A stretch of DNA of 64,000 bases from Paragordius varius. Lineage: Eukaryota > Animalia > Nematomorpha. The position numbers and the translations under genes were made by a program. Below, in pieces: positions 23,347-61,982 of this stretch (within the stretch, counting starts at the first letter, position 1; each line of letters opens with the position of its first letter). The stretch spans positions 6,262,001 to 6,326,000 of the forward strand of contig OZ176051.1 in NCBI GenBank assembly GCA_964247055.1, given 5' to 3'. The notes below the pieces were generated by a model that was not told the DNA's origin, searched no databases, and saw nothing but the letters and a program-made list of their open reading frames with translations.

Positions 23347-26300
23347 ATGGGTTTACGGGACAAACAAATAAGTTCGTATATTTTAACGTATAGATGCCTT
23401 GAAAAATATGTTTAATTTTAACCAAGTCACAAAAGATGATGAAATTAATTGGAAGGTAGTTAATAATAAAATTCATTAGATTTTAATCTATGATCAAATT
23501 GGTTATGATATAATATCGCCACATTTTACCATAAAAGAGTTGAGAGATTATGGTATAACCCTTAATTTGTACGTCAATTATTGATAAAAATTAGGCATCT
23601 GAATTCTCAAAGAGATCCTATACCTGATGCACCCGCAATATATTTTGTATATCCCTCATTAGAAAATATAGAAAAGATTGGCAAAGTATCTCTTGTTTAT
23701 ATAAAATATATTTTAATTTATATTCTCATGATATGATTTTTTGTTTTAAAGGATTGTTCGGAACAATTATATGAGAAATTTTATCTAAATTTTATATCAC
23801 CCTTATCACGACACAATATGGATATACTAGCAGCCATATGCGTAAAAAATATGTGTCCCAATATAATTGCTAAAGTAACCTGTTATGATTATAATATAAG
23901 ATATATGATCAATATTTGAATTACATTACTCTGGAAGATTACATGGTTCTACTAAATCATCCCCTTAACAACGATAAAAAGTTGTATTCATTTTATGGTA
24001 AGCATATAATTTTGACTCTACATAATTTTACTTTTTAAGCTTTTTCTTTAATTATTGTTTTAATTAATCTATAAAAATATTTTAATTTTATTGTAACAAA
24101 CTATTATATCATCATTATCACAAAGGGTAGGACTCGGAATTCGGAGTTTTCGTAACACGAAGTAATTCAGATTCATAATATTTATACTTCATGGTAATCT
24201 GAGGCGATTTTTTTTGGAATACATGCCCTTGTGTATAAACAATGTTTTACAGATCATTAGAAATTGGACTTTGCCGTTATAGCGCATTTTCACGCCTCAG
24301 CAAACATCGCGGGGAGGTGTCAATAGGCTTATGATATTATCAAACTAAATATAGTTGTTTTATATTTTAACAGAATTCAATTCAAAACGGGTTGAAGATG
24401 CATTGGTGGAAAAAAAGATCGATGCTTTAGTCGATAAATTATTTTGTGTCTTTACTACGATCGGTAATTTTTAATTTAATTTTATTATCATTTTTTTTAT
24501 TAATTTTATATAATACAAATTTAATAATTATTATATTTATATTTAATTGCATTGCATTGCAAGTACAAATCCCAATCATATTTTATCCATCTACCACAAA
24601 TGCGGCAAAATTAATTGGCGAAAAACTACATAAAAAGATTCAAGACAATTTGAAAGATCCCAAAAATAATTTGTTCATAGCTTCAAACACATCCATGTTT
24701 TCCATGCAAAATGGAATGGATTCTGCCCATGGGTTAATTAATAATCGATATGTAGTTTTAAACGTTGAATTACAGCTTTTTAATTTTTTTTAGTTTATTA
24801 TCGTTTTAAATTTTAGTTTTTTTAGTTATAAAACCGAATTAATTCATACAACTATTTTTTATTTTAGTTTTGATTCTCGGTGCTGTTTAATAATGGTAGA
24901 TCGAACTTTTGATTTGGTGACACCGTTAGCCCATACATGGACTTATCAAGCTTTGTGTCAAGACTTATTTGTATAAATATATTTTACACATTTAAACATA
25001 AAACATTTTTTTTCAATTCTATTATATTTTTGTGATATAAATTTCTTAGAAATACGATTTAAATAAAATTGGTTTGGCGGAACATGGTATAAACAAAACA
25101 TATGATCTAAATTATGACAAAGACAAATTTTGGAAGGATCATAAAGGAAGGTATTTGACAAATAAATAATTTTATATTTAATTGTTTATATTTTTATGCA
25201 TTTTGTTGAATGATGGGTAAAATTTATATTTTCATGAGACAGAAATAATTAGGGACATCTATTTAGGGCTATATTGCATAGTTTCGATATCTCTAGAAGT
25301 TAATTTAATGTTAATCCAAAAGAATAATCTTATATATATATAAATATATGTATATTAATAAGTTTATCTGACCCATGTCTTCTTTCTTTCAAGTAATGCA
25401 TTTTTTACGGCCGGTTTTATATATATTTTTATATTTAATATGCAAAAAATTATATAACCTTCTTTATATATACGTATATATATATATTAGTCCATTCCCT
25501 TCGGTGGCTGAAGCCATACAAAATGAATTGGAACATTACAAATCACGAGAGGGTGAAATCCGCCGCCTAAAACAAAATATGGGGGCTGGCGAGTTGGGAT
25601 CATCCACATTATCTAATGGGGTCGGAGGAGAATCTGAAGCTCTTATGGATATTTTGTCGGGCAATACTAATGCCCTAACTAATGTAGTCAAGTAATTGCC
25701 TTATTTTATATGCATTTTATCGTACTTTTTGTTTGAATTTCTTTGTGTTTAAACGCTAGTATTATTCATAATACCTTGATTGTAATGTTTTATGACCCTT
25801 TAACAGGGCAATGATGCCTTAACTAATCTAGTAGATTAGATATATCAGTTTTTTTAGTTTTTAATTTTTTGATTTTTCTAAAATATAGTCATTTTTTGGA
25901 ATGCCTAACACTCCATTACCCCTTGGGTTAGTTATATATCAGAGCGATTTAGAATTTGAATATCTTAAAAATTACCTAATGTTAAGCCTAAATCCAAATT
26001 ATTAAGCGCCTTATACGATTTTTTTAAAAAAAGGAAAATTGTGAAAAAATTCTTATCTCAATTGGCCTTTTTTCCATAGAGTTCATTGAAAAGATTATCC
26101 CAAAAGGAACGTTGTAGTTGTTTTCTACATAAGATTCTATTATGAGTTAAGTCTATTATATCTAATTTATGTTGAACTAGGTCCTCTTAAATTGTTTGCA
26201 AGTCTATAATTTTTTTTAAATCACTAATGCAACAAGCAAATGGTATATGGTTAGAAAATGTAAATAATTGACTTTAAAAAGCTTTCAGGCTACATTTTAC

Positions 26301-29300
26301 CAGCAAAAACTTGATATATTTTGATTTTAACATCAGCTGTTTGTTCCGATCGTGTTTTGAAGCTGTCCCAATTTTAGACTCTAGAAGTCGCAAAGCTTTT
26401 TTATAATTAAATTTCAACTAAAATAACTTTTAAAACTGTTGTTTATTTACAAAATTGATCTCTGGGATATAAAATTACCCCAAAAGGTTAAGGACAAAAA
26501 AGTGAAAAGGTAATGCAGTTTTTTAATATGTAATAAATATAAATGTCTTTTCCTATTATTACTGCAAAATAACTCATTTTCCCTTTAATAGATAAAATAT
26601 CAATGTATAGATACGATATGTAAAAATTAAAAATTATATGTAAAGCGTAAAAATTAAATGACAACCCATACAAAAAAACAATATTTTTTTATATTTGTAT
26701 TTAAAAGATTACATTTACATATTGAAGTTAATTTACACCAAGTCTCTAAAACAAAATGCTATATTATAAAAACAAAGTTTAAAAAACAATTACCATTGAA
26801 AAATAGCTTTTTTATGTTTTGCTTTATTAATGTCAAATGTAAATGAAATATTGATTATATTAATATATTTTATGTAAAGTTCGTTACCACAATTGCTTGA
26901 AACTAAAAAATATTTGGATTGTCACACAAATATTGCGACAGAAATTTTGGACCGGATCAAAAAACGGCATTTGGATCAATACTTTGAATTGGAAGAAAAA
27001 ATATTGGCAAAAGCATCGTATTTGGTAAAAAATATTTATTTTAAATAATTTTTATTGTATATATATGCACATAGATAAAATTTAATGTATATTTTGCCTA
27101 TTCATTTTTACAACTGTTAAATATGATTCACTCGTACATTGTTTTAGGTATTTACGATTAAAATTAATGCAATCATTTAGATCTAGCCACTTAACATAAC
27201 GTTTAAAATAACATATTTAACTTTTTTTTCACACAAAAAATAATTTGCATATATTTATGCCAAACAATTAAAATTTGCCAGTTTTTTATTTAAATATCTC
27301 TTATTTTATGCGGTTTTTTCACGCATTGATGTTTGATTGTATAAAATATGTTTTTTTTGTTTTTAATCATTCCTTGATTTTGTTTTAGGATCCCGATCTT
27401 TTTGCCTTTATAAGCGACCCGTCCAAGGGTACATTGAAAGATAAATTTCGCCTATTTTTGTTGTCCTACATGTGCAATTACATTCCAAAAGTAAGTTGTT
27501 TGTAGCGATTTATGATAAATATTAAATTTGTAAACTCTATTTAACTTTTTATATTAGCATGAACTTTCAAAATTTCTCAGTGTATTCCGACAATATGGGT
27601 CAGATGGCGGGAGTGCGGATGCCGAAATTATAGCAAATATTGATAATATCGTTAAATTCGTTGACTATATAAGGTTATTGATTATATAATTATTATTTAA
27701 CAGATGAATTAGATTAGATCGTTTTTTAGATTTAAGGTTGATTGATTCAAATAGCTATCAGTTTATATATTTTTCGCTAAATTTTGTTGAAAAAATTTTT
27801 TCGTTTCTATTTGGAGTTTTCTCAAATTTTATTCTATAAAAACTTATTTGCCTAAAAATTTTTTGTTAAATATAGAAACATTAATCAATCAGATTCTTTG
27901 GATAGTTTAAGCAACATGAGTAATACATCAACAGCCATGTCTAATGCATTTACCCCAACCGAAGGTTTTGCCAAAAAAATTGCAATGTTTGGAAAATTAA
28001 TGTCCCAAGGGAGTCAATTTGTTATGGAAGGTGTCGCAAATTTCGTTGTTAAACAACACGTAAAAACTTTTTACTAAGATTTTATTTTGGGAAATTATTG
28101 TTATAAAATTATTTTTTGGAATTTTTTAATTATAATTATTATAACTAGTATCATTTCAATAATTATTTGATATAATATATATTTGGCCTTTCTTTTTAAA
28201 ATAAACACAAAATATATTATAATAAACAGTTAAAAAATTTAAGAATTTTAAAAGAATTTTAATTTTTATATATTGCATTACAATATTCTGAATAATATTT
28301 TACTATTTGCTTTTAAATGGTTTATAAATTGATTTATCCAAATATATTCATTTATAATGCAAAAATTGTTTACATTTCTATTTTATTACGATTTCAAAGA
28401 AAGTTATTACCATTAGACAAATGATTTACATCGCAGTAATTAAACAATAGAATCCCAATATCAATTGGGCCAAATTATATACCTTATATCTTAATCATTA
28501 CATAGTTTTTTTTTCATTGCACATATACCATTTACAATTCAAATTCATCCTCAAATAAATTATATGTTTTTTAAGATTAAAAATTACCTATAATTATATA
28601 TATTTTTAAAATAAAATTTAAATTTAAATAATACTCAAAAAATAATAAACTATGCCACAAAGATATATTTTATATTAATATTGAGTTATACTAGTTCGAA
28701 AACACATAATTTATTTTTAGGGTGAATTTAACTTATTCAAGGGTGAATTTGAACTGTAAATGGTATATCATATATACATACAGAAATTACCATTGACCAA
28801 ATTAGTGGATAAATTGACTGAGAAACCAAGCACTCTAGCAAATACTGCTTCAAACCTTAACCTACAATCTTTAGCTGGTAGTGCAGGGGCTATGTTACAA
28901 AATCAATTTAGCGGTGGAGATAAGCAACGAGATGGATATGGTATTACAAATGCTAAGAGTGGAAATAAATCCAAATTAATTGAATCAACATACATGTGTC
29001 ATGATCCTAAACTTCTCAAACAAACCGCACCCACTTCGATTGAGTATGCCCTTTTTTATGTTTTTCAATTTCGTTTAGTCAAAAAATACCATATATATTG
29101 AATGATACCGTTGGTAATTAATGTAACCCTTAAAAATTATCATTGTATTTTTAAAACGTTTTTTACAAATATATTTGTGTTTTGTGGAAATCGTTATAAT
29201 TTTACGATTCGTCAACAATTAATTTAAATGTAAATTTTGCTTGTATATTAAATTTTTACTATATTCCTAAAGCTTATCCAAAACTAATCCAAATATTACA

Positions 29301-29616
29301 CCCTATAACAATGTATATGTATGCGTTATTGGTGGTGGTACAATGATGGAATTTCAAAATTTAATGGATTATGCCAAAGTTTTTTTTTCATTATTTTTTG
29401 AAATTATCTTCTAAATTTTAAAATGCATTTTTCTTTCAAATCTTTTGTAAAAACTATTTTACATTGAAATATATTTTATTTCTAGTTGAAAATGAATAAA
29501 CAAATATATTACCTGTCATCCGAATTCATGAGTCCTGATTTGTTCGTCGATCAAGTAAATAACTATATTTTAATTAATTTTAGATATCAATGCTTGCCCA
29601 AGAATATTCTACATAA
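23347..29616 (+). CDS. SCFD1: Sec1/Munc18-family protein SCFD1 (Sly1), 19 exons, about 721 aa
   Basis: Exons: 23347-23371, 23394-23455, 23480-23568, 23595-23685, 23752-23874, 23901-23997, 24374-24463, 24564-24732, 24868-24970, 25050-25150, 25491-25691, 26880-27024, 27389-27490, 27558-27673, 27876-28059, 28784-29043, 29273-29378, 29486-29554, 29584-29616 (2166 nt). Motifs: MGLRDKQINALKNMFNFN, WKILIYDQIG, RDPIPDAPAIYFV, YDQYLNYITLED, DRTFDLVTPLAHTWTYQAL, DKFWKDHKGSPFPSVAE, HTNIAT, GSQFVMEGV, VIGGGTMMEFQNL. Confidence 0.95.
23372..23393 (+). other. 22-nt GT-AG micro-intron (SCFD1 intron 1)
   Basis: gttcgtatattttaacgtatag; removal joins MGLRDKQI|NALKNMFNFN; retention shifts frame to a TAA. Confidence 0.85.
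23456..23479 (+). other. 24-nt GT-AG micro-intron (SCFD1 intron 2)
   Basis: gtagttaataataaaattcattag; its terminal TAG is an in-frame stop; removal gives NWK|ILIYD. Confidence 0.9.
23569..23594 (+). other. 26-nt GT-AG micro-intron (SCFD1 intron 3)
   Basis: gtacgtcaattattgataaaaattag; removal gives GITLNL|HLNSQRDPIPD, colinear with Sly1 GITLHLLLHSDRDPIPD. Confidence 0.9.
23875..23900 (+). other. 26-nt GT-AG micro-intron (SCFD1 intron 5)
   Basis: gtaacctgttatgattataatataag; removal gives IAK|IYDQYLNYITLED. Confidence 0.9.
25790..26490. mobile_element. Interspersed repeat family 6 (second copy inverted at about 34500-35110)
   Basis: caggctacatttt..atcagctg..tgaagctgtc and aaatcgctc..aaccc(a)aagg blocks recur in reverse complement at 34.7-35.1 kb; ends in ggttaa. 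Boundaries are approximate. Confidence 0.55.
28523..28768. mobile_element. MITE family 3 copy in SCFD1 intron
   Basis: atataccatttacaattcaaattcatcc ... gggtgaatttgaactgtaaatggtatat. Confidence 0.78.
29555..29583 (+). other. 29-nt GT-AG micro-intron (SCFD1 last intron)
   Basis: gtaaataactatattttaattaattttag; removal gives FVDQ|ISMLAQEYST*, matching the Sly1 C-terminal pattern (FIKQLSQLGQ). Confidence 0.75.
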
Positions 29617-36250: not shown

Positions 36251-36263
36251 TCTTATTATTATT

Positions 36264-36838
36264 TTAACACTTGGATACAACCCAATCACTTTAGCCCTTC
36301 AATTTAAATTGGGATAGGTAAATACTCCAAGTCTGTTTAATTTAAATTGTTTAAAAAATATGGAAGGAATAGAAAGCATGGCAAATTTTGCACTTATATA
36401 GCATGATAAACCGAAATGTATAAAAAACTTTATTCAAAAATACTTGATATTACCTATTTTGAGCTAAAACCCAAAGGTAAAAATTTAGTCAACGTGACGT
36501 GTCTGCATTGGTAAAATTGAAAAATAATACAAAACAAACCAGTTTTTCTATTCTCAATTTTAGACGTAATTTAAATAAAAAATTATAATTTTACCTTTCA
36601 AATAACATGAATAGGATATTTTGCAAAAATTTTATAAGATAAAAATGGCGTCGAAGTAGTTTGACATGGAACTTTTTTTTTTCAAAACAAAATTTTATTT
36701 AGAGATTTTGGCTTATTTATATAATTTTTATTGGGATAGAGGCATAAATTTAAATTGGTACCGTTTCCTTTAGTAGTTTTTTTAAAATATTTTAAAATTA
36801 GTCTGGGGTATATACCCCAATTTGAATTGAGGTGTTAA
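36264..36838 (+). mobile_element. TTAA-flanked MITE family 1, copy B
   Basis: ttaacacttggatacaac ... ctggggtatataccccaatttgaattgaggtgttaa; shares the internal aaaaatggcgtcgaagtagtttgac motif. Confidence 0.82.
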
Positions 36839-36969
36839 GATACGCCGTTGTTAGTTATTATCAAATTATATCAATCTGTTACCCTGAGGTAGCCGACCCT
36901 ATGATTAAAAGTTTTGAAAAAATTTAAAATTTTAGATGTACAAAATACAAACATTATTGCTCCGTATGG

Positions 36970-37556
36970 TTAACACTTGGATACAACATACTAATTTTAG
37001 TCCTTCGATTCAAATTGGGGTAGTTGGATACCCCAGGGCCTGTTTAAAATTAAATTCTTTAAAAAATATAGAAGGAAACGAAACCATGGCAAAATTTTGC
37101 ACTTATCTAACATTAATCAACCGAAATATATAAAAATTTTATTCAAAATACTTGATATTACTTATTTTAAGCTAAAACTGAAAGGTAAAAATTTCGTCAA
37201 CGTGACATGTGTTAAATTGTAAAATTGAAAAATTATACAAACTAAACCGCTTTTTCCATTTCTATCAATGTTAGATGTAATTTATATAATAAATTAGCTT
37301 TAGTTTTACCCTTAAAATTAAATAAAGACGATATTTTGCAATAATTTTGTAAAATAAAAATGGCGTCGAAGTAGTTTGAGATGGAGCTTTTTTTCAAAAC
37401 CAAATTTTATCAAGATGTTTTGGCATATTTATATAATATTTATCAGGATAGAAGCACAAATTTAAATTGGGACCGTTTCCTTCAGTAGTTTTTTAAAAAT
37501 AATAATTTAAATTTAGTCTGGGGTATTTAAATACCCCAATTTGAATCAAGTGTTAA
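36970..37556 (+). mobile_element. TTAA-flanked MITE family 1, copy C
   Basis: ttaacacttggatacaac ... ctggggtatttaaataccccaatttgaatcaagtgttaa; direct tandem copy about 130 bp after copy B. Confidence 0.85.
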
Positions 37557-38996
37557 ATAAAATCATTGTTGAAATTCCTAATTAAAACTATAATATTTTT
37601 ATCAGAATATCGACGAAATAATATTATCCGAATTTTATATTTATAAGATATTTTATAAGGTAAAAGCCGATATTGTTAATACGAAAAATTATTTTGCATA
37701 CGTTTTTATTATATTTTAAATTTTATTGTACTATAATCTGATTTTACCTAGAGGTTGCTTTATAACACAAAACACGAATTCTACCTTATTTCATATGTTA
37801 ATTTTTATAGTTCACATTCGCTGCACTGGGTAATATTTTATTTTTGGTATAAAAATTGTTAACACCTTTTTTATATTGTATTAACATATTCTAAATATAA
37901 ATTAAGATATTGCTGATATCAGCAAAAATTAACTGTTTCAAAGGTCAAATGTTTATAAATGAAGAATATTTACATGTATATTTTTATAATTTTAGTGATT
38001 CAAAATTATTAGCTGCCATATATCTATTCAATCAAATATAGTATAAATTATCTTTGTTTATTAATATATAACTATTATTTCATAATTATTAGATTTCACC
38101 TTGATCAGTTTGGGTTGTATTAATATATTTTTTTATATCTAATTTTTGATAATTATTTAACCGATAATAGTTTTTAAGATTTAAATCACCTTTCTGTTTT
38201 ATTCACGCCATCAATATGGCATTTTTTCTCCGATCGCTTTTCATATAATTATATAATCTCTGAACAACACCACATAAGTTATCGAATAAAACATTTAAGA
38301 TGATTCAGTTTTCATATTAAATTTTATGCGGTTTACTTTTAAAATTTTGATATTAAAGTTTGGTCTCAATGTTATTTTTCAATTATTTCCATTGCCATTG
38401 CATAATATAAATTAGGGCTAATTTTATTTAACAAAATTATGATATATACCAATTATTTTCAAGTTTTTAGCGTTGTTTAAACAAATATTAAAGAGATTTT
38501 AATGATATAATATGTGTAAAAATAAATGTAAAAGGCGCTTAAACATTTATTTTTAACTTATGTTTAAAAGATACAACTAAACTAAACTACCTTCTCTATT
38601 GATTTTTTGATTTGAAAAGTAGGTTAACCTGTTGACGAATTGTTATGTAAATGATACATAAATGCATACTGCTTATTGCAGCTAAAATTATTTATATATC
38701 ATTTACGAATACGCTTACTACTTTAATCTCTGAACTGTCATATCTTTATTGCGATTACATACACATTGCTAAATATTTGCGGACTTTACTGTTTTTTATT
38801 ACTTCCTATTTTTATTCTCTTCCAATTTCAAATACCTTGTTTTTTTTTCAACAACATTTGATACATCCGGAATCATTAAAAATTTGGACATTTTTTATAT
38901 CATACAAATTTAAAGTACGTCGTTATTTTATTGGTTGCTTGAGATCGTTTTATTGTTACGGAATAAGAAATTTAATTATACTGATTTTTTTGCGTA

Positions 38997-39031
<35 letters not shown>

Positions 39032-44800: not shown

Positions 44801-47800
44801 CAATGGCTCAATTGATGGCTCATTCTTTGTCTCGTATTGGCGGTATTCACGTTAAAAATATTGAAGCTCGAAGTGCTTGTGTAGTTTGGAAACCGGTAGA
44901 GATTTTGATGGAAGAATCTATGGCGGGTATATCGGTAACGGATATTGATGTACTAACCTTTGACCCTGTGTATAAATTGTATGCCCATCAAATATCAGTA
45001 AAACAACCATCTCACAAGGATGTTGTTATATCATCCATACCTGCTGAATCGACATTAACCAATAACGTTCTTGTGTATTGTGGCCCCTTGTGTGAATATT
45101 TGCTCAAAGATCTCCAACCCGGAACACAATATGAAATATATCTTGAAGCTTTTGCTTGCAATTATCGCGGAGAACGTAGCAAATCCGTTATGTTTAAAAC
45201 TTGCTCAGAATCGCCAGATTGTCCTAGTGCTCCTAGTCTTATTTACCATACAAAAAATAGTTTGACCCTACAATGGGATTCTCTTATGAACGACAATGGG
45301 TCCAACATAATTTATTACACTCTTCAAATGGGTGAAATACATGACACCATAAACAATATAAAAAATACGGTTAATAATAATGCAACTCCTATGGCAAGTT
45401 TAAAATTTAGCACAATTTATCGTGGTGATGAGAAACAGTTTAAAATAAGCAATCTAAAAGGTTCGACTACATATGCCTTTAGATTAAGCGCGACAAATTC
45501 CATAGGTACATCTTCGTTTTCTGATCCAAGAGAATGTTGTTACACTCTTAGCGAAAATGGAACTTTGTTTATGGAGCTTGTTGGAAAACCAAATCCCCTC
45601 ACTTTGATACAAGCCAGCCACGATAGCTTATTATTGGCTTGGGAACATCAATCTGAATTATCAGCCACATCATCATTGTCCATAATTATTCAATGTCAAA
45701 ATGAAACAGTTAACAATAGTGATTTTGTAACCTTGTTTAATGGTCCAGCCTTACGGTTTTGGAATAAGGCTTCCAATGATTATAGATTTAAGATTGGCAG
45801 CGACCAAATTAATGATCATATTTCATATTCCTTTTCCCCCAAGCACACCTATAAATTTCGGGTATGTCCTACGTATAATTCTATCTTTATATCTCAACTT
45901 TATGGATTTAAGGATTCCCTAATATATGTACCTTAAAATAAAAAAAATAAAGTTTATTAAAATAAAAAAATTAATTGAGCATGTATCTGAACAAGCATAA
46001 TATCATAATATAATAATTAATGGTTTAAGAAAATTAATCTTTTTATTCTAAAACTTTGATTTTTTTGTTCCTATTTTTCTTTTTTATGATATGCATATTT
46101 ACTTAGTCATAGTATTATTATATTTTCTTTTTGGTATTCATTTTTTTATTTTTACTGTGACTATTAACCCGGACCATTTGATTTATGAAAGATGTATTAT
46201 TAAAATTTTAGCTAAAAACAATTGATGAGGACGGACAAAGTCTTTGGAGTGATACAGTTTCATACCAGGTAGCTTCTAAACCGATTGAACCGCGGGAAAG
46301 GTTTTGCGTTAAGGAAGTAACACCTACTACTATCCAGTTGTATTGGGGTATGATTTTTTTCAAAAATTAAAAATAAGCGATTAAAATATTAGCAAATAAT
46401 CTTTTTTTCAAATAATGATACCTCTTTTCTTATTTATCATAGAATAAAAATATGGATTTACATAAATTAGTCTTTAAAATAAAAGATTAAACTTCAATAA
46501 GTTATTGAAAGAAGTTTATAACTCTTATCTTTAACGGTTAAAAAGTAGATACACAATAAAATATATTAATTATTCATTTATATTTTATTTATTTAAAAAA
46601 ATTAATTCTCATATATATATATGTATATATATATATATATGTAGACCATTCAAAAGACAGTATTTTGCCCGTTTCATATCAAATTTATATGTGGGACGAA
46701 TCCATCGATCATCAAACGCTAATTTATCAAGGTTATGACAACGAATTTTTAGTTCAAAATCTAAACCCCGGACATCAGTATTGCTTTAAAATTTTATCAA
46801 TTTCTTCGTCTGAAAATGAATCGTGTGATATGGGATCATTAATGGGTGTTTGCACACCCCCTACAGTACCAGAAAGTATGGATGGAAAACTTCGAATCAT
46901 TAATGTGAGACAATTGGATAAAAATGCGACGTTAATAACTACATCCAAAGTTAGTGTTGCCTCTAAAACGGTTTCCTTACCAAACATAAAATATGAAATT
47001 GATCTTGATTGGTCATGCAAAGATATCTTTGATGGTGGTTCACCCATAATCAATTACGTTGTAGAAATGTGCTTAGAACCTGAAAACTTGGCTTCTTCTA
47101 CCCATGATAAGGGCACTTTACGTGTTAAACAAGCTTCATATAAAATTTATGAAGGCCTTGCACCATTTTGCAGCGCTAAGGAGTTAAAACCAAACACCAC
47201 ATATTATTTTCGAGCCTGTGCTATTAATTCCGTAGGACCTGGTCCTTGGTCAAATTGGTTGCATTGTAGTGCTACTACGATTAGTCAAGGTCTCCCCCCA
47301 GCCCCAAAACATTTTACCGTGAAAGTTAAATCACCGCATAGTGTTTCGTTTGGCATTGTGTCACAACAAAATACTACGACGCAAGACAATGATGATACGC
47401 CACCTATTACAAAGTATCGTATAGAAGTTTCGTCAAAGGCAAAAGATTTTACCCTGTTTTGTGAGATTGGTGTAGTTGAGGACGGGAATGGAGAATACAA
47501 GGGATTGAATCATGCTCACACTTATGCATTTAGAGCGTGTGCCGTAAATAAGATTGGATGTGGACCCTTTACTCCAACTGTTACGGTGGAAATGCCTCCA
47601 TATGTGCCTTCACAAATTGCATCTAACTCTATTAGGTGCGTATCTAAAACACCCACTTCGCTTGATTTGGTCTGGGATGTACCATGCGATTCTGGTGGAT
47701 CGCTCATACAAAAGTATGCCATTGAAGTTGAACAAATAATCCAGAATAAAAATCAACAAAACAAGTCTCCTACGACAATGACATACGTTACAGGTATAAA

Positions 47801-50426
47801 TAACATTTATTTAAATTAGGTTTCCAGTTTTTACTCAAAAGTTTAAAAAAAGTTTTTTGAACTTATACTATACTTTAAAATGCTAACTAATTCATTGGTT
47901 TATATATTGATTGGAGGAGATAACTTTTACAAAATCAATTTAAACTATATTGGCTATGTATCACGGAATGTTATGTACAATGTTTTAAGTTACTCCTATT
48001 ATGAAAAAACCCTATTAAATTCTTATTTGTCCTTTTAAAATACAGATAATGCCGAAACCACAACTTACACGGTATCTGGTTTAACACCCTATAACACGTA
48101 TCGAATCCGTATTCAAGCCATAAATGAGATTGGTGTCGGTGCTTTTTCTCATCCCGCTCAAACTTTTTTAACACCCGCTGCCAAACTTTTGGAAGCGCCC
48201 AATTTTGTAGTTTCACAATGTGGTTGTCTTTTATCTACGCAACCTACAACGCTAAAACTTAAATGGGATTTTTCTGCCCACAATAACCATTATTCCGGGA
48301 CAATGACCAATCATGATGTGATTCGTTATGAATTGGAAATGGCAGATTATAGAAAAAAGTTTTTTTTCCTCTCTTTTTTACTGTAACTAATAATTAAGGT
48401 AAAGACGGAACAGCATAAAAAACAACCATGTTTATGAATTTATTTTATAGAAGAGAGTGTTGCTTATTTACATCCTATTTTTTTGCAAACCAAAATAATA
48501 GGTTTTTATAATATAAATATGGTTTTTTAAATATATAAAACTCTTTTACTTTATATTTTGTTTATATAATTCTAACATTAGTGTATTATTACTTGTAAAA
48601 TAATTTTATGGCCATTTTTTAGGTTTCAGAGCATATATTTTGGTGATGGTACATCCTACAAAGTATCAAAACTTGTTGAAAACACGGCATATGATTTTCG
48701 TGTTCGCGCTCATAATGAGAGTGGTTATGGTCCCTATTCGACAAACTTGACTCTCCAGACTGATTGGTCATTTCCCATTATGGTTAAAAGTATAAATTTT
48801 ATTAATTTTACTTTGATTTATATATACTTCTATTGAGTTTATTCTGATTTTAAGTAGAAACTTTGTAAAAAAATTATGATGTATAAATAGTTTTTAATTA
48901 AATACCCAATAGTATATGAACAAATATAAAATGTAATATATTATAAAATATATCGATAATCGCATTCTTAATGTATAAAAGCATTTGTCACACTTTAAAC
49001 ATCTTATGTAAATTATTTACATATAATTAGAATCTAAAGTTAATAATACAAAACAAAATGGATGTCATATATTTTGGCCCTATCCCTCTTCCCCATATCA
49101 AAAGCAATGTCCGGTTGCCTACAATGTAACGCCACATACTACCTGGCAATACATTTTTGAGCTCTACTTATCTAATGGGAGTGATTTAACTTTTAATCCT
49201 AACATTTTATCGTTTGAATCTGGGGTACCTACTATTACTTCTACGGAAGAAAAAATTGATAATTCCTTAACTTTGGTAATTTAGACAGACTTTTATAAGT
49301 GCTTATGTGACGAATTGTTAAATTATTTACTATTATGTCATATTTATTTATACTCTATATTCTTTAAGTATTAAAAATTTCCCAAAAAGTTATGAAGCTT
49401 AGTTTGCTTCTCTGCAATTTTAAAATGGAAAGTTAGGTATATATAATTTTTAAATGAAATCGTTTTTACTTACTTATAATAGGATTGTATATTCTATTAG
49501 GCCTATCGTGGTATCAAACCAGAATGTTTTTTGAAACTTTGTCCGGCCACTGATTACACCTATAAAATTATCGTGTATCGTGAAATATTACAATTAACAA
49601 TTAAACAAAGCGATAGTTTAGACACCTCGAACGTTTTGGAAAACCGTAATATTAGTAGTGAGGCCAATCAGCAAAACACGGAACTTCAGCCTTGCGATAA
49701 TATTCCTTGTCTCAACGACAAAAAATTGTTGGAACCATATTATATGACACTTAAATATTTGAGGGGTCCTTTTTCACCCATATTTTCATTTAAAACTAGT
49801 GGAAAAAATTTGTTATCCAACAATGATGACAATATAAACTCTCATTCAGTATCTGAGAAAAATGATTGTCCAATGTCAAAAGCCACTAATTATAATGGCA
49901 ATAACCCTTTAGCTATAATGTACAATGCCTTGGCTTGTGGGATATGGATTATTGGTTTTTTATTTATGCATTTTTCAATAAATTCGATTTTCTCCAAATT
50001 TTTAAAGGGGGTTAGTTTTCTAAGATTTATTAGCTATATCATAGATTAATACGTTTTTATGAAATAGGTAATAAGAAAACAGATTATGGTTTTATGCTTC
50101 CTCAATTCGTTCGACGCTTTATAACCCATTTTACTGTTACGGGCCGTAAAAATAAAAACGGAGATGAACGACAAGATAATCTTCACCAAAATAAAGCAAA
50201 AACACCGCACCTCTTTAATCGTTTAACAACCACAATATTTTCCTGCCGTAAAAACAAAAATGAAAAAACCAAAAATTTTTTAAGGACTTGTCGCACTACC
50301 TATACTCAAACAACTACTATTAGCGTGAGTGATCAAAATAGGGCATTACTATATTCTTGCATTTTTGTGTGTCTTGCTCTCCTAACTACAACCGTTCTCA
50401 CAATATTTGTTAAATACTTTGATTGA
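41851..50426 (+). CDS. FNDC3: Fibronectin type-III domain-containing protein 3-like (FNDC3 / miles-to-go), 9 exons, about 2246 aa, membrane-anchored C-terminus
   Basis: Exons: 41851-42148, 42332-45861, 46212-46347, 46645-47793, 48046-48358, 48623-48789, 49031-49275 (alternative acceptor at 49040 possible), 49501-50010, 50034-50426 (6741 nt). Long Pro/Asn/Ser-rich N-terminus, then tandem FN3 repeats (LKDLQPGTQYE, LKGSTTYAFRLSATNSIGTS, LKPNTTYYFRACAINSVGPGPWS, LTPYNTYRIRIQAINEIGVG, LVENTAYDFRVRAHNESGYGPYS) and a hydrophobic tail SDQNRALLYSCIFVCLALLTTTVLTIFVKYFD*, which matches FNDC3 architecture. The start codon is inferred. Confidence 0.85.
50011..50033 (+). other. 23-nt GT-AG micro-intron (FNDC3 last intron)
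   Basis: gttagttttctaagatttattag; the best-supported junction I found that joins ORF 49531 in frame to the tail-anchor ORF 50094-50426 without stops (weaker phase-1 donors upstream are not excluded). Confidence 0.7.
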
Positions 50427-52299
50427 AATCTTTTCCAAAATCAATCAATCTATAAATCAATTTTTGATATTTAATAAAAAAAATACAAAAAAACGCGTGG
50501 CCCAATTTTATGTTATTTTATAAGTTGTAATTCATCAGGTATGATGTGAGGTGGAACAATAAAAAATTAAAGTTTTATACTATCTATAATATACACTTAT
50601 ATTGCAAACTCTAACTATTTACTTTTTTTATTATTATTATGTTTAAGGCATAAAATGCAATTTAGTTTAATTTAGCATATACAATTTTTTTAATGTTTTT
50701 TTATAATTTTTTTGTACATACTCTATCTATATACATCAACTTCAAATGTTTATCATTATTTTATTTAAATTATTTAATGTGTTTATGACTCGCATATATG
50801 GAACAAAACAAATCAGAATTAGTATTTAGAAAATTTTATTATAATACCCAGCACGGCATATATTTCATTTAATTTAAATTATAAATGCATCCATCTATTT
50901 AACCCTATTTATTTATCATCAAATACTATGTTGTTTTTTACGTTGCTTTAAACTTTACCCATATTTATTTATTTAAGGTGCATATCTTATCCCCCCACAT
51001 TTATATATTTATATAATATAAAATCATTTAATGTTAAAACGTATAATATTTAATATTTGAATCATAATAGCCCATTTCTATGATTTAAAATTGGGAAAGC
51101 AAACATGATAATTTTATATATATTAAATTATTTAACATCTACCATAATTAATTCATGTTGTAATAATACTTATATATATAGCATATAATTTAATGGGACG
51201 ACGTTTTTAGTACAAAAACATCAATTTTGATTTTTATTAATTACATACTTTTTTTGTACTTTCAATCATTTTTTTATATATAATGGAAAAGGGATTTTTT
51301 ACCTTTTATTATTAGCTTAGCTGTGCTAATCCATAATTTATTTATTAATGGTAAAGAATTTTTTTTTTATTTATAATACAAAATTATATGATTCTATATC
51401 TAAAATTCTATCATTATATAATTTAAAAGGGCGGTATGGATAATATTTTATTTAGTAAAAAATATTTCATCACCTTTGATCTGATTTATTTTAGTATACC
51501 ATTCAAATAATAAATGCATTATTAACCAAATATTTGTAATTACATTAATTTGAAAGAATTTGTCAGATTATAAGGTAAACGCGCTGCATATATTTTACAA
51601 AAAATATATGATTATTTTTATTTGAATAATTGCTAAAAATTATTTATTATTTAAATTTAGATATCCTAATGTATACAAATTTTTTATTTTATGATGGATA
51701 TCGTCTGGAAAAAAGTTAAATAATTTGTAAATTCGGACTCTAAAAAGTTTTTGAATGATAAAAATGTAAAGTAAAATAAAAATTAATAATTATATGCTAA
51801 AAATAAAATAATAGGTAATTATATGGAAATATGGTCCTACACAAAATTTAAGGATCAACTCAATGTGTTTAAGAACCAACTTGAAGTGTTAAAAGACACT
51901 CTAATCCTGCAAATGATATATATACACAATAAAGAAATTCGATAATTGATCATATATGCGATGAGCTTTTATTTGAAAATTTTCAAAATTTTTATAATCA
52001 CATATTTTAACTGATTTTAGTATAACTAAAATTTCAAGCGTTATTAACCAATAGATTATGAACTCTTCGCCATTAGTTGCAGTTCTTAATTAATTTAGAT
52101 ATCGTTTGACACATTTTTTGGCTATATATGTTTTTTAGTATAAGATGATTATAAATTTCTTTCTAAAAACATAATTTTAATTTTGCTAAAAAATATTAAC
52201 ATTCGCTATATTTTGAAATATGAGTATAAAAAATAAGCATTATTTATATTAAATAAAAAGTATTTTTGGCCAAAATATTTGCGATCATACTGTTAATAC

Positions 52300-52303
<4 letters not shown>

Positions 52304-52371
<68 letters not shown>
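52304..52371. repeat. (AT)34 microsatellite in GALK2 3' region
   Basis: 68 bp of uninterrupted alternating AT, ending 18 nt beyond the GALK2 stop codon. Confidence 0.95.
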
Positions 52372-52373
<2 letters not shown>

Positions 52374-52389
52374 AAATAAAAATAATGAG

Positions 52390-55300
52390 CTAATAAGTGA
52401 CATCCGATGCTAAATATATGGAAGCTCCCGTTCCAGGCCCAGTGGGAAATAAAATTGGCGTTTTTGCAAAATTATTGGTAGTTTTTATGCCGTTGTAAAA
52501 ATCTTTTTTCACATTGGTTAAAAAAGGGTCCAATTTTGATTTGGGTACCATACTTACACAACATCCGCCCCAACCTGCACCAGTTAATCTGCTACCTATT
52601 GCACCATGGTTTCTAAGATATTAAAAGATAGATAAATGTATGTATTGTATTTAAGAAGTCTGAATTTCGAAATTAACATTTAGTTTAGGGTTTTTAACAT
52701 TAAAAAACGGTTATGAAGAAACATGGATAGAATTAATAGCGTTAAAGAAATTATGGATTCAAATTTTAAAAATTACTACTATGTCAGAAAATTATTTATA
52801 TACGGAAATTACTTAATAATAATATTTTTTGCGTTTTGTGAGAGAAAATATAAAGTAGAGCCTATTAACTCAATCCACACATAAAACACATACCATTTAC
52901 ACCCTTAACAATTCTAATTCACTCTTGAACAATTTAAATTCTCGAACAATTCAAATTCACACTAAAATAAATTATGTGTTTTTTAAAATTAAAAAATACC
53001 CATATTTTTTTATATTTTTAAAAAAAGAAATTCCGTTTAAAATTAATATAATACTGAAAAAATAATAAACTATGACATAAGAATATATTTCTTATTAATG
53101 ATGATTTTAACGCAAAAAGGTGAATTTAAATTGTAAACGGTAAATTATGATTAATAAAATAGTACTATTTTATTGATTTAGATAAAAAATCCTTTTAAAT
53201 GTGATTCCATTCTTAAATGCTAACAAAAGTTTAAAAATAGGAGAGTGGTGCCTTATAAAAAATATTGTATAAGAAAAACCAATACTAGGTTTACAATCAT
53301 CATTAATCGATATAATCCAACGCTTTGTATTACATATATTATAAAATTTCAAAATAATAACCTACAAATTTGAACCAAATTATTAAGTTGAGGGTGACTG
53401 CAATCGTACAAAAGATCACAACTCTCATGACTTTCATTCATTAATTGACCCAAATAGTTTGCCTCCGTAGTATTTAAAATGTCCCCTTTGTCGCAATTTT
53501 TGGAACAATTATCGTTTTTTTCAGCCAAACTCTGACATTGGCGTTGAAAAGCATGGACACGCATAGTTTCTTTGCAAACATGCATAGCACGATCGTGTAA
53601 ATTGAAAGTTAAATTCTCTACACCTAGAAACAATTTATAAATATTTTAACGGTTTGATTGTAAAATAATGAAATTGGATGTATGTCGTCAATACTATACA
53701 AGGTAAAAAAATGGATATAATTTAAATAGTAAAGAAATTCCTTTATTTATTCATTTTAATAATTAATCACAAAATTTAATTTATATATAAATAGGGCAAT
53801 TGTCTATTGACCATTGTCATACCATAAGATTAAATAAACTTTATTTAACATTTGCAAATTTAAGTATATGTAATGTAAAAGGAGCATAAGTTACGTTTAA
53901 TGATATTTAAGTAAATTGCCAAAAAAATTAAAATTCGTAATAATTCGATTTTTTAAAAGACGCGAAAATTATAATATATCTAGTAATAAATAACGTTTTT
54001 TTTTCAGATCAATAAATGATAAAATTTGGGTTCAAAATTGTAATAATATTTAAAATACCAGGTAGACGTCGGCCACGTAAACAAAGCTCATTAAATTGCG
54101 TCATATCGATTTGCAAAATATCTAGAATTTCATTTAGTGTATATTGATATGGAAACTTTAATATCTTATCTATAGCTTCAATCATTTGTTCCAAACTAAA
54201 GTTTAGCAATTTTTGAGCTTGCGAAATATTGATTATCGTTTTCCATTTGGTGTCGTTGAGAATAGTTTTGCATAAAATCTAACAATAAAATATAAATTCA
54301 GTCAAAATATTTCCATTTGCAAGGTAAAAAAATCCACTAAGTTTATTATTTCTGCATCAAGGAATATTTGAAAACATTAAAATGTAAGAAAAAAATTACA
54401 CAAAGATGTTTTTACAACATGAAAATGTTGTTGTTATAGCTAAGATTGGCGATTCGCTGCTATTTCAGAAGATTTCCCAGATTGTACGATTTGGTGTGAT
54501 GGGTATCAACTGCTCCAATTAGCTTGGTATTTTAAATTATGTTATCATTTTAACGCGTTGTGCACCTACTGCGTTTTGCAGAACATTCAACTTTTCCCGA
54601 CAGGAGCTTATACTAAAGGTGTTTGGCTCTAGTATTATGACCGAAGTAAGAGAGCTTCTCTTAAGGCATAAGCCGGATAGGAATATGTTAGGTTTGATTT
54701 TAAGAATTAAAATGTTTTTAATTATATTTTTGGTCTGAAGCAACTTTCTCCAACAATCCAAACTTTAATATACATATCTTTCATCTCCCGTCTTTACTGA
54801 CCAAGTCGCTGCGGCTTAAAGTATATGATAGTCAGAGATTTTATTAGTCTAATTTTGATTTAAGGTTGATGTCATGAGATGACCGCAGCTTGTTATAATC
54901 TATCATATTCGCTTTGACTTTTGCTATTCTTTCCTGATGTCTAAGGTCCTATTTATCGTGTTGATGATAATACCGCGCTAGATGAATTGTGAATCTGGAG
55001 GAATTCAATCCTCCATGTAAGGTATTATATTGAATTTGTGAATTATCTGCATAATATTTGTTTTATGATATCATTGGTTAAACGAATCGTTTACTTTCGA
55101 TGAATTGTATTAGGAATGTAATGGGGTTATCTAGTGAATTGGATAGAAATATCGTGGCGTATGCGTAATGAAATGACGTATGATATTGTTTTATCGCGAC
55201 TTTTATACAATTTTTCTATGTTACGTGTGATGCTTTCAAAGCATATTTGAAGAGATTCGGTGAAAAGATGCATCCTTGAAGCAATCCGGTGTTTATTGGT

Positions 55301-58300
55301 ACCACTTGTTTGTGCCATGTGGAGTCGATATACTGAAATTTAAATTTAAAAATAAGTTTATTGTTTTTATAATATAATTTAGGATAGTGTGTTCTAGGAG
55401 CATGTCGTGCTTTATGCTATCATAGAAAATATATGCGTTAGAAATGGGGAGTCGGGGAAAGTTGGTTAGGTTTAAATCAATTAAAAAAATAAAATTAAAA
55501 ACACTGAAATTCTTGATAAAATCAGACCAGACATATCCCTGTTTGGCATATGATGTTCTCTTACTTCGACAATCTCATTAAGCCACAAACATGAAGTATC
55601 TGCTCAGTCATGGTTAAAGTTAATTTAGAAAACGCGTTAGATTGATAGCTTAACTAAAGAAACATGGTCATAACAATGCAACAGTTGATACCCATCACAA
55701 CAAAACATACAAGCTGGCGAAATTATACTTATTAAAAAGCAACAAATCAACTTCAATCTAAAGTATATGCCATCAAAGATTTTTTTATCCAAGTTTAAAA
55801 ATTTCAAAATAAACTTTATTATATTATATAAATTTTTAAAAGGGTGTGGGTTGATGAAAAATAAATTTATCATATATATTTCATAAAATGAGATTGTTCA
55901 AAGAATTGGATAGTAGAATCGTGTCATTAGCGTAGTGAAGCGAAGATATTGTGTTGCTGGAAACTTTTATTTCAAATGATTTGTCAATGTTGGGTGTGAT
56001 GTATTCGATGCAGATGTTAAAGAGAATGGGTGAAAGGAGACAACCTTGGCGTAATCATATACACATGAATTTCAGCATAAAGATTTAATTATTATATTTT
56101 AATTAAATCCTTGAATATTCTGATTTGGGATAGTGCGCTCCATCGCTCTCCCTAGACAACCTCATTTTACTCCTAACAAAACATTTTACAACCGAATGTC
56201 AAAAATTCGGTCTAAACAGCTATTATAATAAAGCAAAAATTATGCACATAAACTCACAAATACAATACAATACCTAACCCTTTATGTGAACCCACTGTAG
56301 TACCACAATTCCTTTACCATGGTAGTCTAATCAACACGACTAACGACACAGCACTCCAGACAATAAAAGGATAATGACAATCGACAAAGCAAATAGGATA
56401 AAATACAATAAATTATGGTCATCCCACGATATCAAACTCAAAACCAAGATTAGACTAGTCAAATCTCTGATCTTCCCAAGCATGCTGTACGGTGCAGAGA
56501 GTTGGACAATAAAGAAAGGTGATGTAAGATATATCAGTGCCTTAGAAATGTGGTGCTGGAGAAGCTGCTACAGATAAATTCGAAAGAAAAAATAAAAAAC
56601 AGTCCTCGATAAAATTACACCTGAAACATCCTTATACGGCTTATGCCTTAAAATAAAACTATTTAACTTTGGCCACATGTATCAGATTATATCGGGCAAA
56701 GTTGAAGGCTCAAGAAAACGCAGGAGATGTAAAATGCGGTGGATCGATAAAACTAAAGAAACCAAGCTAACAATGCAACTGCTGATATCCATCACAACAA
56801 ACCGTACCTGGCGAAATAGTAATAAATCAACTTCCATCTAAGCTATATGTCATTGAAAAAAATTTTCAAGTTTAAAAATTAAAAATATATATGCTTAATT
56901 AAAACACTTATATTTAATGGAGAGATAAGGCTTTTTCACAGAATAATTGTTATATCGGTTTTTTTTCTTTAATATATAATTTTAATAAATGTATTTTTGA
57001 TAAAAAGAGTTGAAAATGGTAAACTTTTTGTCGAAAAAAGGGAGATTTGAATGTAAATTAATTTTGTCGTATTGAAGCATAAAATTTATCTTGACAAAAA
57101 ATCAAAATTTTACCTGTGAAGCCAGACAACATTCAAGGACTCGGTGATTAAATTTTATCGTATTTCCCTTATCCATTTCAATCATGCTGTGAGCAATCAC
57201 GAATGCATAATCACTTGGTAAGTTCACCGGTTCAATAACTAATGGATTAAATTTTATGTGCGATGCCTATTTTTTATAAAAAAATTTAAAAATTTACTGA
57301 TTAAAGCTGAGAAACCTTAAAAAATATATATATATATATATGAATCAAATAATTTTAATATTAAAAAATTGAAATTTCTATGAATCGAAAAGTGAGTATG
57401 TTAATATGAAAATAAAATATTTAAAAATAGTAACTTGTATTTTAAGAACTATAAAATATAAACATTTTTTTGGATTTAAAATTTTTTCTTAAAAGTTTTA
57501 TACTTATATAAATTTTTAAACATATTCAGCTAAAATGTATTTAAACTTTATCCATTAAAAAACTAAACCCAATAATTTTTAGAAATTTAATTTACATGAT
57601 CGGTTTGAGCAAGAAAACATATGGCCTGATCCATACAACCTCCTACTGTTCCGATATAACGTTCATTCGAACAACTCAATTCGGCCATTTCAAACTGTAC
57701 TCAAAAAAATTTAATATAAAAATAAATTTATAATTTATTTATTTTATGTCTATAAAATTTAATAAATAATAAACTGAAATTTAAATATAATCTAAAAAAC
57801 TAACAGAATGAAAAAAGAATGTTAATTTTAAATAAGTATAATTAGACCTATAAAACCAAATTATATTACATAAAGAAGCTAAAAAATATATATTTAAAAG
57901 CAAAATAAAAAACATTAAATTCAAGGACAAGACAATTAAATAAGCAAACCATACATATTTATAAAATTATATTTTAAATTATATAATTATAAAATAATTA
58001 ACATTAAAAATTTACCCTATTTAGATTTATATGGTAGGCAAAACAAGTTATTAATGTAGAAGCACAAACTAAAGCACTTGAACTAGATAAACCGGCACAG
58101 GGTGGTAGATTTGAGCTAATTAAAATTTTTATTCCTTAGAATATAAATTGGGAAAAAAGTACCTTTGATAGAATGGTTTGGATAAAATTTTTCAAGGGTT
58201 CCCTTTAAACCGGCTAAAAAATAATCGTTCCATTGTGGTTTATCTGAATTTATAAAAATTTGTTGAAATGTGTCAGATTCCGAATAGATATATTCTGATG

Positions 58301-58695
58301 GCCTAAAATAATAATAATAATAATCTATCATGCATTAAAATTAGATATATTAATGTTTCGCAAACCTTACCTAAATCTAGGATCCATGTTTTTCAAAGTA
58401 ATACTGTGATCCGGAAATAATCTTACAGCAATCAGGATATCATTATCAATTGCCATAGGTAATACACTATAGCCATTGTAATCAATATGTTCCCCTTCAG
58501 GATTAAAGATGTAATTTATTACCAATTATATTAACACGACCTGGTGTTCTAACATAGAATTCGGGAAATTGCCCATATAATTGTCGAAAGTGGAATTTTA
58601 AAATTTTGATTCTATTATAATCAGTAAATGCATATACACCTTTCGATTTTAGAAATAGGAATATCCCGTGAAACATAGGTATTAAATTTTTTCAT
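52390..58695 (-). CDS. GALK2: N-acetylgalactosamine kinase / galactokinase 2 (GHMP kinase), 10 exons, about 494 aa
   Basis: Exons (minus strand): 58640-58695, 58523-58611, 58371-58494, 58163-58302, 58016-58134, 57596-57694, 57114-57266, 54059-54278, 53362-53623, 52390-52612 (1485 nt). Motifs: [122 protein letters not shown]. Confidence 0.95.
52889..53145. mobile_element. MITE family 3 copy in GALK2 last intron
   Basis: ataccatttacacccttaacaattctaattcactcttgaac ... aaggtgaatttaaattgtaaacggta. Confidence 0.7.
54420..55335 (-). mobile_element. Decayed RTE-clade (BovB-like) non-LTR retrotransposon fragment
   Basis: Minus-strand translation gives [14 protein letters not shown] (RT QG motif), a [10 protein letters not shown]-like segment and DCWRKLL, with many stops and frameshifts; within GALK2 intron 7. 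Confidence 0.75.
55500..55810 (+). mobile_element. Decayed 3' end of the same RTE LINE
   Basis: caatgcaacagttgatacccatcacaacaaa and aaatcaacttcaatctaa..caagtttaaaaatt match 56770-56880. Confidence 0.6.
55890..56065 (-). mobile_element. Reverse-transcriptase core fragment (RTE-like)
   Basis: Minus strand reads [18 protein letters not shown]...[10 protein letters not shown] (YADD changed to YAND). Confidence 0.75.
56290..56880 (+). mobile_element. 5'-truncated RTE/BovB-like LINE 3' fragment
   Basis: ORF 56374-56577 [11 protein letters not shown]...EMWCWR, and downstream [18 protein letters not shown], are RTE C-terminal signatures. Confidence 0.85.
58135..58162 (-). other. 28-nt GT-AG micro-intron (GALK2 intron 4)
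   Basis: gtacttttttcccaatttatattctaag; joins SIK|[19 protein letters not shown]. Confidence 0.9.
58495..58522 (-). other. 28-nt GT-AG micro-intron (GALK2 intron 2)
   Basis: gtaataaattacatctttaatcctgaag; splits the invariant GRVNIIG|EHIDY motif. Confidence 0.93.
58612..58639 (-). other. 28-nt GT-AG micro-intron (GALK2 intron 1)
   Basis: gtgtatatgcatttactgattataatag; links the ATG exon to [25 protein letters not shown]. Confidence 0.8.
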
Positions 58696-61571: not shown

Positions 61572-61636
61572 GCGGATTAAACAATTTATTTATTTTTTTT
61601 CAATCTTGTGATATTGATTATAATTATTTTCACACA

Positions 61637-61982
61637 TCAATGTTCATCATGCTTATGCGAAAACAATGGGGTTTTGCCGTCTCCCCACCAAAATGGCTAA
61701 AAATAAATATATAAAAAAAACTTTATTAATGCGATGCATATATGAATAAGGCTTTATCTCATCTGGATTATGAGGTTTTTCGTGCTTTTTTAAATAATAC
61801 ACATTAAGATGTCCCAAAACAAGTAATGGACAGAAAAAATAAAAAAATACGTTTTTCCACAATCGTTCTTTTGCTAAAATATTAGAAAAATTTATACCTC
61901 TGACCTGAACGGGATCAGAAAACCCGCTCATCATACGTTTTGCAACAAAAGTTGTGTGGATCGATTTCGATAATATTGCCAT
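61637..61982 (-). CDS. COX6A: Cytochrome c oxidase subunit 6A, mitochondrial precursor (98 aa if both micro-introns are spliced)
   Basis: Exons 61898-61982, 61722-61873, 61637-61696. Basic transit-peptide-like N-terminus, RLWKNVFFYFFCPLLVLGHLNVY transmembrane segment, PYSYMHRINK|PFWWGDGKTPLF matching the COX6A (R/K)PFPWGDG motif. The 24-nt first intron is in frame and so not proven. Confidence 0.88.
61697..61721 (-). other. 25-nt GT-AG micro-intron (COX6A last intron)
   Basis: gttttttttatatatttatttttag; removal restores RINK|PFWWGDG. Confidence 0.9.
61874..61897 (-). other. Probable 24-nt in-frame, stop-free micro-intron (COX6A intron 1)
   Basis: gtataaatttttctaatattttag, with a CTAAT branch-like site; retention inserts 8 codons without a frameshift. 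Confidence 0.6.

Follow-up and report, generated by a model that had tools for sequence, protein, structure and literature searches.

Putative spliceosomal introns of 22 to 29 nucleotides alongside kilobase-sized introns in the hairworm Paragordius varius

Introduction

Introns shorter than about 30 bp were formerly considered absent from animals (Hadjez et al., Mol Biol Evol, September 2026, PMC13644364). According to the main text of that paper, a survey of 51 genomes found introns of less than 30 nucleotides (nt) only in myxobolid myxozoans and Dicyema, and further cases were predicted. The Nematomorpha are not mentioned in this main text, the list of the 51 species being placed in its supplement. 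Here, we describe a window of 64,000 nt from the hairworm Paragordius varius (Nematomorpha; GenBank assembly GCA_964247055.1, contig OZ176051.1, positions 6,262,001 to 6,326,000 of the forward strand), in which eleven GT..AG segments of 22 to 29 nt, referred to below as micro-introns, lie in the genes SCFD1, FNDC3, GALK2 and COX6A. All positions are given relative to this window, which denotes the whole stretch of DNA analysed.

In Caenorhabditis elegans and Drosophila, the shortest-intron peak lies at about 45-65 nt, and recognition of introns this short is generally held to take place across the intron. The first-pass annotation of the window had compared its segments with the tiny introns of ciliates, nucleomorphs, microsporidia and dicyemid mesozoans; this list left out the myxobolid myxozoans (PMC13644364). 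For hairworms, no report of introns shorter than 30 nt was found in the literature combining hairworm or Nematomorpha with introns, a body of work in which Cunha et al. 2023 was not covered, and two hairworm genome preprints never use the word 'intron'.

Results

Eleven short GT..AG segments in four genes

The first-pass annotation had proposed eleven GT-AG introns, most of them required for the reading of conserved proteins. All eleven segments are present at the proposed positions and lengths, and each of them begins with GT and ends with AG. Judged from the sequence and its homologies, eight of them are firm (five in SCFD1, two in GALK2 and one in COX6A): exact removal of each gives a conserved protein, and retention gives a stop codon or a frameshift. 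The requirement holds for these eight, where the conserved frame is restored, and does not extend to GALK2 intron 1, COX6A intron 1 and the FNDC3 segment, which are treated as candidates. The segments are:

23372-23393, + strand: SCFD1 intron 1, 22 nt, phase 1, firm; Gordionus counterpart of 47 nt
23456-23479, + strand: SCFD1 intron 2, 24 nt, phase 0, firm, the best-scoring junction; Gordionus counterpart of 41 nt
23569-23594, + strand: SCFD1 intron 3, 26 nt, phase 2, firm; Gordionus counterpart of 41 nt
23875-23900, + strand: SCFD1 intron 5, 26 nt, phase 0, firm; Gordionus counterpart of 49 nt
29555-29583, + strand: SCFD1 intron 18 (the last), 29 nt, phase 0, firm; Gordionus counterpart of 2028 nt
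50011-50033, + strand: FNDC3 segment, 23 nt, candidate only; simplest join to the tail exon
58612-58639, - strand: GALK2 intron 1, 28 nt, candidate only; GT..AG, joining an upstream ATG in frame
58495-58522, - strand: GALK2 intron 2, 28 nt, firm; flanking exons aligned with 2a2c
58135-58162, - strand: GALK2 intron 4, 28 nt, firm; flanking exons aligned with 2a2c
61874-61897, - strand: COX6A intron 1, 24 nt, candidate only; GT..AG, 88% A+T
61697-61721, - strand: COX6A intron 2, 25 nt, firm; gapless junction peptide

The genes that carry them were modelled as follows:

23347-29616, + strand: SCFD1 / Sly1 homolog, 19 exons, 721 amino acids (aa); Gordionus-guided model, Pfam Sec1 on one exon
41851-50426, + strand: FNDC3/'miles to go'-like gene; homologs of its 1171-aa exon, Pfam fn3
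52390-58695, - strand: GALK2 (N-acetylgalactosamine kinase-like), 10 exons, 494 aa; human GALK2 (PDB 2a2c), Pfam GHMP_kinases_C
61637-61982, - strand: COX6A, 3 exons, 98 aa; junction peptide aligned with COX6A chains, weak Pfam COX6A

The Pfam matches in the window (Sec1, fn3, GHMP_kinases_C, Pkinase and the weak COX6A) are all on single exons.

Intron positions in SCFD1 are shared with Gordionus

The rebuilt SCFD1 protein of 721 aa is 60.2% identical over its full length to the Sly1 homolog of another hairworm, Gordionus montsenyensis (XP_065323975.1; P0002). In an exhaustive profile search with one SCFD1 exon as the query, this protein was the sole close full-length relative, and the next long, near-full-length match (P0001, 596 aa) was 37% identical. 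An initial reading of the source as a dicyemid or a ciliate-like organism was rejected on the strength of this relationship and of the use of all three standard stop codons in the genes. The genomic locus of the Gordionus gene (L001) was obtained from Gordionus sp. m RMFG-2023, which is G. montsenyensis, and its own protein was mapped onto it exactly. The protein has 737 aa in RefSeq, and the annotation deposited with the assembly is the same over this whole length. The deposited entry, CAK9294242.1 (P0014, 811 aa), consists of the 737 aa of RefSeq and a C-terminal extension of 74 aa, which probably results from an incorrectly called end or from fusion to the following open reading frame (ORF).

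The comparison of intron positions covers SCFD1 and this one other hairworm, and in it all 18 introns of the P. varius gene are identical to those of Gordionus in both alignment column and codon phase. The lengths of introns 1-9 are 22, 24, 26, 66, 26, 376, 100, 135 and 79 nt in P. varius and 47, 41, 41, 45, 49, 4070, 348, 106 and 531 nt in Gordionus; those of introns 10-18 are 340, 1188, 364, 67, 202, 724, 229, 107 and 29 nt in P. varius and 2453, 1493, 771, 508, 269, 749, 1022, 476 and 2028 nt in Gordionus. At the first five junctions, the flanking exon bases are nearly identical in both species.

The five micro-introns of SCFD1 have to be removed for the protein to be read. When intron 1, 2, 3 or 5 is retained, the protein ends at 22, 36, 63 or 144 aa, respectively, and for intron 2 the source of the truncation is an in-frame TAG at the end of the intron. 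When intron 18 is spliced out, the C-terminus aligns with the final exon of the Gordionus gene; when it is kept, this conserved end gives way to 49 unrelated aa.

The first five Gordionus introns, all of 41-49 nt, sit within the first ~600 bases of the gene (L001 3029-3622), and 12 of the 13 later ones are at least 269 nt long, the remaining one being 106 nt. Since the short introns of Gordionus are bunched at the 5' end of SCFD1, and the micro-introns of P. varius are likewise bunched at the 5' ends of genes, 5' clustering is common to both worms. The Gordionus genome is also A+T-rich, with a G+C content of 26.9%. The other three genes are not found beside SCFD1 in Gordionus, where the 10-kb flanks carry genes unrelated to GALK2, COX6A and FNDC3.

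Junctions in GALK2, COX6A and FNDC3

The GALK2 model of ten exons is in frame throughout its 494 aa, with introns of 28, 28, 68, 28, 321, 329, 2835, 435 and 749 nt. The exon before intron 2 matches 2a2c up to residue 68 (..GRVNIIG) and the exon after it matches from EHIDY, so that removal of the 28 nt leaves the galactokinase signature gapless. The exons around intron 4 match 2a2c from residues 113-142 onward and at residues 149-189 and are contiguous; retention of this intron shifts the frame ahead of the PPxxGLSSS motif. For intron 1, an alternative unspliced ORF from another ATG is equally open. As the N-terminus is too weakly conserved to choose between the two starts, this intron is regarded as a candidate only.

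In COX6A, a peptide of 33 residues across junction 2 (..RINK|PFWWGDG..) aligns without a gap to 17 chains of the COX6A family (for example, 7o37_g residues 46-74), and the PFxWGDG motif is lost when intron 2 is retained. Intron 1 of this gene is in frame and free of stop codons and lies within the unconserved N-terminal presequence; it has a CTAAT motif 8 nt ahead of its 3' end.

The last exon of FNDC3 encodes the ending typical of the family, an SDQ..A motif and then a membrane helix, which the homologs P0015-P0019 also have. The frame of this tail exon differs from that of the preceding ORF, which ends at 50046, so a change of frame is needed. The 23-nt GT..AG segment offers the simplest join to the tail exon; longer joins are possible, and the solution is not unique. 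The other introns of FNDC3 are of about 183-350 nt. A reading of the upstream ORF at 42421-45936 (+ strand, 1171 aa) as a transposon was rejected, its homologs being FNDC3A and 'miles to go' proteins. The coding exon concerned, of about 3.5-3.6 kb, is of low complexity and rich in N, S and P over its first two thirds, after which fibronectin type III repeats follow.

Intron lengths and splice signals

A total of 37 introns were modelled in the four genes, which is a small sample. Eleven of them are of 22-29 nt, none of 30-65 nt, three of 66-68 nt, five of 79-183 nt and 18 of at least 200 nt, with a median of 183 nt. The gap from 30 to 65 nt and the maximum of about 2.8 kb, both described in the first-pass annotation, were recovered (the longest intron is 2835 nt). 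From the sequence, we likewise agree that what appear to be real introns form a tight class of 22-29 nt alongside introns of 66 nt to 2.8 kb. The three introns next in length are:

23686-23751, + strand: SCFD1 intron 4, 66 nt; T-rich tract ahead of the AG, Gordionus counterpart of 45 nt
27491-27557, + strand: SCFD1 intron 13, 67 nt; GTAAGT donor
58303-58370, - strand: GALK2 intron 3, 68 nt; from the GALK2 model

These introns of 66, 67 and 68 nt make up a second small cluster, which looks more canonical than the micro-introns, its members having either a donor of the form GTAAGT or GTAAGG or a T-rich tract ahead of the AG. This length may be the lower limit at which a polypyrimidine tract can be kept. 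In the introns of 22-29 nt themselves, there is no space for such a tract, as had been claimed before and as their sequences confirm.

Splice signals were compared between the 11 micro-introns and 19 long introns of the window, again a small sample. The same weak signals are seen in both classes, namely a GT[A>T]..T donor and a [T>A]AG acceptor. A occupies position 3 of the intron in 7 of the 11 micro-introns and in 15 of the 19 long introns (the micro-introns start with GTA in seven cases and with GTT in three), and position 6 is T in 8 of 11 and 12 of 19, respectively. T is found at position -3 before the 3' end in 8 of 11 micro-introns, which have only T or A there, and in 12 of 19 long introns. 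The last base of the exon is G or A in both classes, with A in 4 of 11 and 5 of 19. The A+T content is 73-92% in the micro-introns and 79% in the long introns, compared with 66% in coding sequence. A YTAAY-like motif occurs 6-10 nt ahead of the AG in about half of the micro-introns, a frequency not clearly above chance at 80% A+T.

The firm segments cannot be put down to chance by itself: the probability of finding GT and AG by chance at fixed ends is about 0.0015 per site, and for the eight fixed sites jointly it is below 1e-18, even with slack.

Setting of the genes in the window

The G+C content along the window is 21-36%, meaning that it is strongly A+T-rich. The first-pass annotation had described the genome as non-compact and rich in transposable elements, and the window agrees with a non-compact, repeat-bearing setting: there are five animal genes in 64 kb, the intergenic distance between SCFD1 and FNDC3 is 12 kb, dispersed repeats are present and a GALK2 intron holds a reverse-transcriptase fragment. 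A self-comparison gave a self-repeated fraction of about 7.7%. The fifth gene and the reverse-transcriptase fragment are located as follows:

~1.7-19.4 kb, + strand: TNIK/misshapen-like STE20 kinase; kinase-domain exons, Pfam Pkinase
55884-56054, - strand: reverse-transcriptase fragment in the 2835-nt intron 7 of GALK2; Pfam RVT_1, E = 1.4e-07

Within the same GALK2 intron, the stretch 55219-55416 (- strand) looked RVT-like by eye and carries no score. In the self-comparison, the stretches 36258-36842, 36970-37559, 62196-62768 and 22173-22720 match sequence elsewhere in the window, and the first three have peptide motifs in common by eye and look like copies of one dispersed repeat. Examples of intronic self-matches are 28534-28780 in SCFD1 intron 15 and 52946-53099 in GALK2 intron 9. 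A long microsatellite of the (TA)n type at 52290-52390 lies directly downstream of the GALK2 stop codon.

The TNIK-like gene has a citron-homology-like C-terminal part and very long exons of low complexity rich in N, Q and S. About ten introns in its kinase-domain part were of ~90 nt or more by eye, and the portion inspected was without micro-introns. No spliceosome gene or small nuclear RNA (snRNA) gene is located in the window, and Rfam and tRNA scans of the window were empty.

Discussion

We consider it very probable that the segments are ordinary GT-AG spliceosomal introns of a nematomorph genome, shrunk to 22-29 nt and forming the species' shortest-intron peak, comparable to that of Gordionus at 41-49 nt and that of model animals at about 45-65 nt. 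The narrow peak usual for the shortest introns would have moved to about 25 nt in the P. varius lineage, together with the usual long tail. The micro-introns would most likely be removed by the major (U2-type) spliceosome, with the whole intron recognised as one unit by a minimal 5' signal (GTA or GTT, often with T at position 6), a T/A-AG 3' end and a high A+T content. An A-rich branch region would probably be located 6-10 nt before the 3' end, in which case the spliceosome would have to tolerate a branch point at about 13-20 nt from the 5' splice site. The polypyrimidine tract could be dispensable, as was proposed for myxobolids and Dicyema.

Several points weigh against this explanation. 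Excision from RNA is something that we infer from the DNA sequence, and three of the eleven segments are dispensable for the reading frame. There is no clear branch-point consensus across the 11 micro-introns. GT..AG decoys spaced 20-30 nt apart are common in the exons of these genes, at 11-24 per kb of coding sequence, and the real micro-introns, which are richer in A+T, would have to be told apart from them. Because such decoys are frequent, the evidential weight lies on homology and on the intron positions held in common with Gordionus, and not on the terminal dinucleotides. As for transcripts or proteins from the same species, the 1171-aa FNDC3 ORF had no exact match, homology searches with the COX6A read-through ORF and with two FNDC3 exons gave no near-identical protein, and the spliced COX6A junction had no exact match in the metagenome contigs scanned for it.

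The first-pass annotation had suggested that a modified spliceosome, or a separate mode of intron recognition, serves the ~26-nt class beside normal splicing. The sharp gap between 29 and 66 nt, the more canonical nature of the three 66-68-nt introns (T-rich tract or GTAAGT donor) and the lack of space for a polypyrimidine tract would be in keeping with this. However, in our sample the micro-introns and the long introns are alike in their weak 5' and 3' signals, and with the same signals in both there is no need for a separate splicing mode. The orthologous introns of Gordionus, at 41-49 nt, fall inside the gap; this range is therefore not forbidden in the phylum and the gap is not a structural limit of it. 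The gap simply separates a narrow peak from a broad tail, which is also the case in flies and nematodes. The suggestion finds no support in this analysis, and we regard it as unlikely. That some of GALK2 intron 1, COX6A intron 1 and the FNDC3 segment are unspliced, chance GT..AG pairs is quite conceivable, although on the whole we doubt it. Each has an open alternative (another start codon, an in-frame read-through free of stops, or other joins, respectively), and decoy pairs are frequent; on the other side, all three resemble the firm micro-introns in size, A+T content and end signals, COX6A intron 1 has its CTAAT motif near the 3' end, and the three lie at gene ends, where the firm ones are also bunched.

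Two further explanations would remove the segments from consideration as introns. If they were assembly errors or small insertions in decaying pseudogenes, a GT start and an AG end in every segment would not be expected, and the joint chance for the eight fixed sites is vanishingly small; moreover, the five SCFD1 segments are on the exact codon and phase of Gordionus introns and the exons are open and conserved across 721, 494 and 98 aa. This explanation can effectively be regarded as refuted. Elimination of the segments from somatic DNA, in the manner of the short internal eliminated sequences of ciliates, would fit their size range, which is near that of the smallest ciliate eliminated sequences. 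Programmed DNA elimination also occurs in some nematodes. However, the ends of the segments are GT..AG and not TA..TA, the SCFD1 sites have Gordionus introns of 41-49 and 2028 nt as their orthologs, and in these genes TAA, TAG and TGA all serve as stops, as in the standard genetic code, all of which makes elimination at the DNA level extremely improbable. Splicing of ordinary introns that have become very short is the explanation that we retain.

We regard as evenly poised the proposal that this hairworm lineage is a third independent animal origin of introns shorter than 30 nt, and the first in Ecdysozoa, in which the lower limit has about halved within the phylum and genome compaction is not the cause. 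As the orthologous Gordionus introns are of 41-49 nt, the lower length limit for splicing would have been roughly halved within Nematomorpha, and as this repeat-rich genome keeps kb-sized introns, the shrinkage would not be a by-product of compaction. If this is true, hairworms add a third animal lineage, with a close relative whose same introns are about twice as long, and tiny introns are able to coexist with long, transposon-bearing ones. P. varius and Gordionus could then serve as a natural pair for the study of what sets the minimum intron length, such as the spacing of branch point and 5' splice site, the use of U2AF or changes in snRNAs.

There are also consequences for annotation. Aligners and gene finders set to a minimum intron length of 30-40 nt will introduce frameshifts into these genes, and genes with such introns tend to be broken up by standard gene finders and in BUSCO-type searches. 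This has a bearing on annotation and on the gene losses claimed for the phylum. If the proposal of a third origin is true, the large-scale loss of universal animal genes that has been reported for hairworms could partly be an annotation artefact.

Comparison with known systems

The closest described systems are the Myxobolidae (Henneguya, Thelohanellus and Myxobolus) and Dicyema japonicum. They resemble P. varius in being parasitic lineages, in carrying, within ordinary genes, positionally conserved GT-AG introns of about 20-30 nt, and in their reduced 5' (GTa) and 3' (AG) signals, the last likeness being based on the small P. varius sample. They differ in that most of their introns are tiny, with a median of 22-27 nt in the main text of PMC13644364, whereas 11 of the 37 introns modelled in the P. 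varius window are tiny and the median is 183 nt. In P. varius, unlike in these groups, kb-sized introns with transposon remains persist, and its lineage is ecdysozoan and closest to Gordionus. The short introns of Gordionus SCFD1 have the position, phase, flanking bases, 5' clustering and weak signals of their P. varius counterparts, but are about twice as long, with none below 41 nt, and the last intron is 2028 nt compared with 29 nt.

Model animals are similar to P. varius in having a narrow peak at the shortest workable length and a long tail. The P. varius peak at about 25 nt is, however, below the ~30 nt that was long taken as the animal minimum, as stated in the main text of PMC13644364. 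In humans, a class of introns of 43-65 nt that depends on SPF45/RBM17 is also short, has a truncated polypyrimidine tract and may bypass U2AF, as described in a preprint (bioRxiv 10.1101/784868); these human introns are rare and twice the length of those in P. varius.

The introns of Paramecium (~25 nt) and of nucleomorphs are like the P. varius micro-introns in length range, A+T richness and GTA..TAG ends. However, ciliate and nucleomorph genomes are compact and their introns are nearly all tiny, whereas P. varius has the standard code and long introns coexist with the short ones. When the window was examined for a ciliate-type origin, standard stops, GT..AG ends and a nearest relative that is an animal, at 60% identity, were found.

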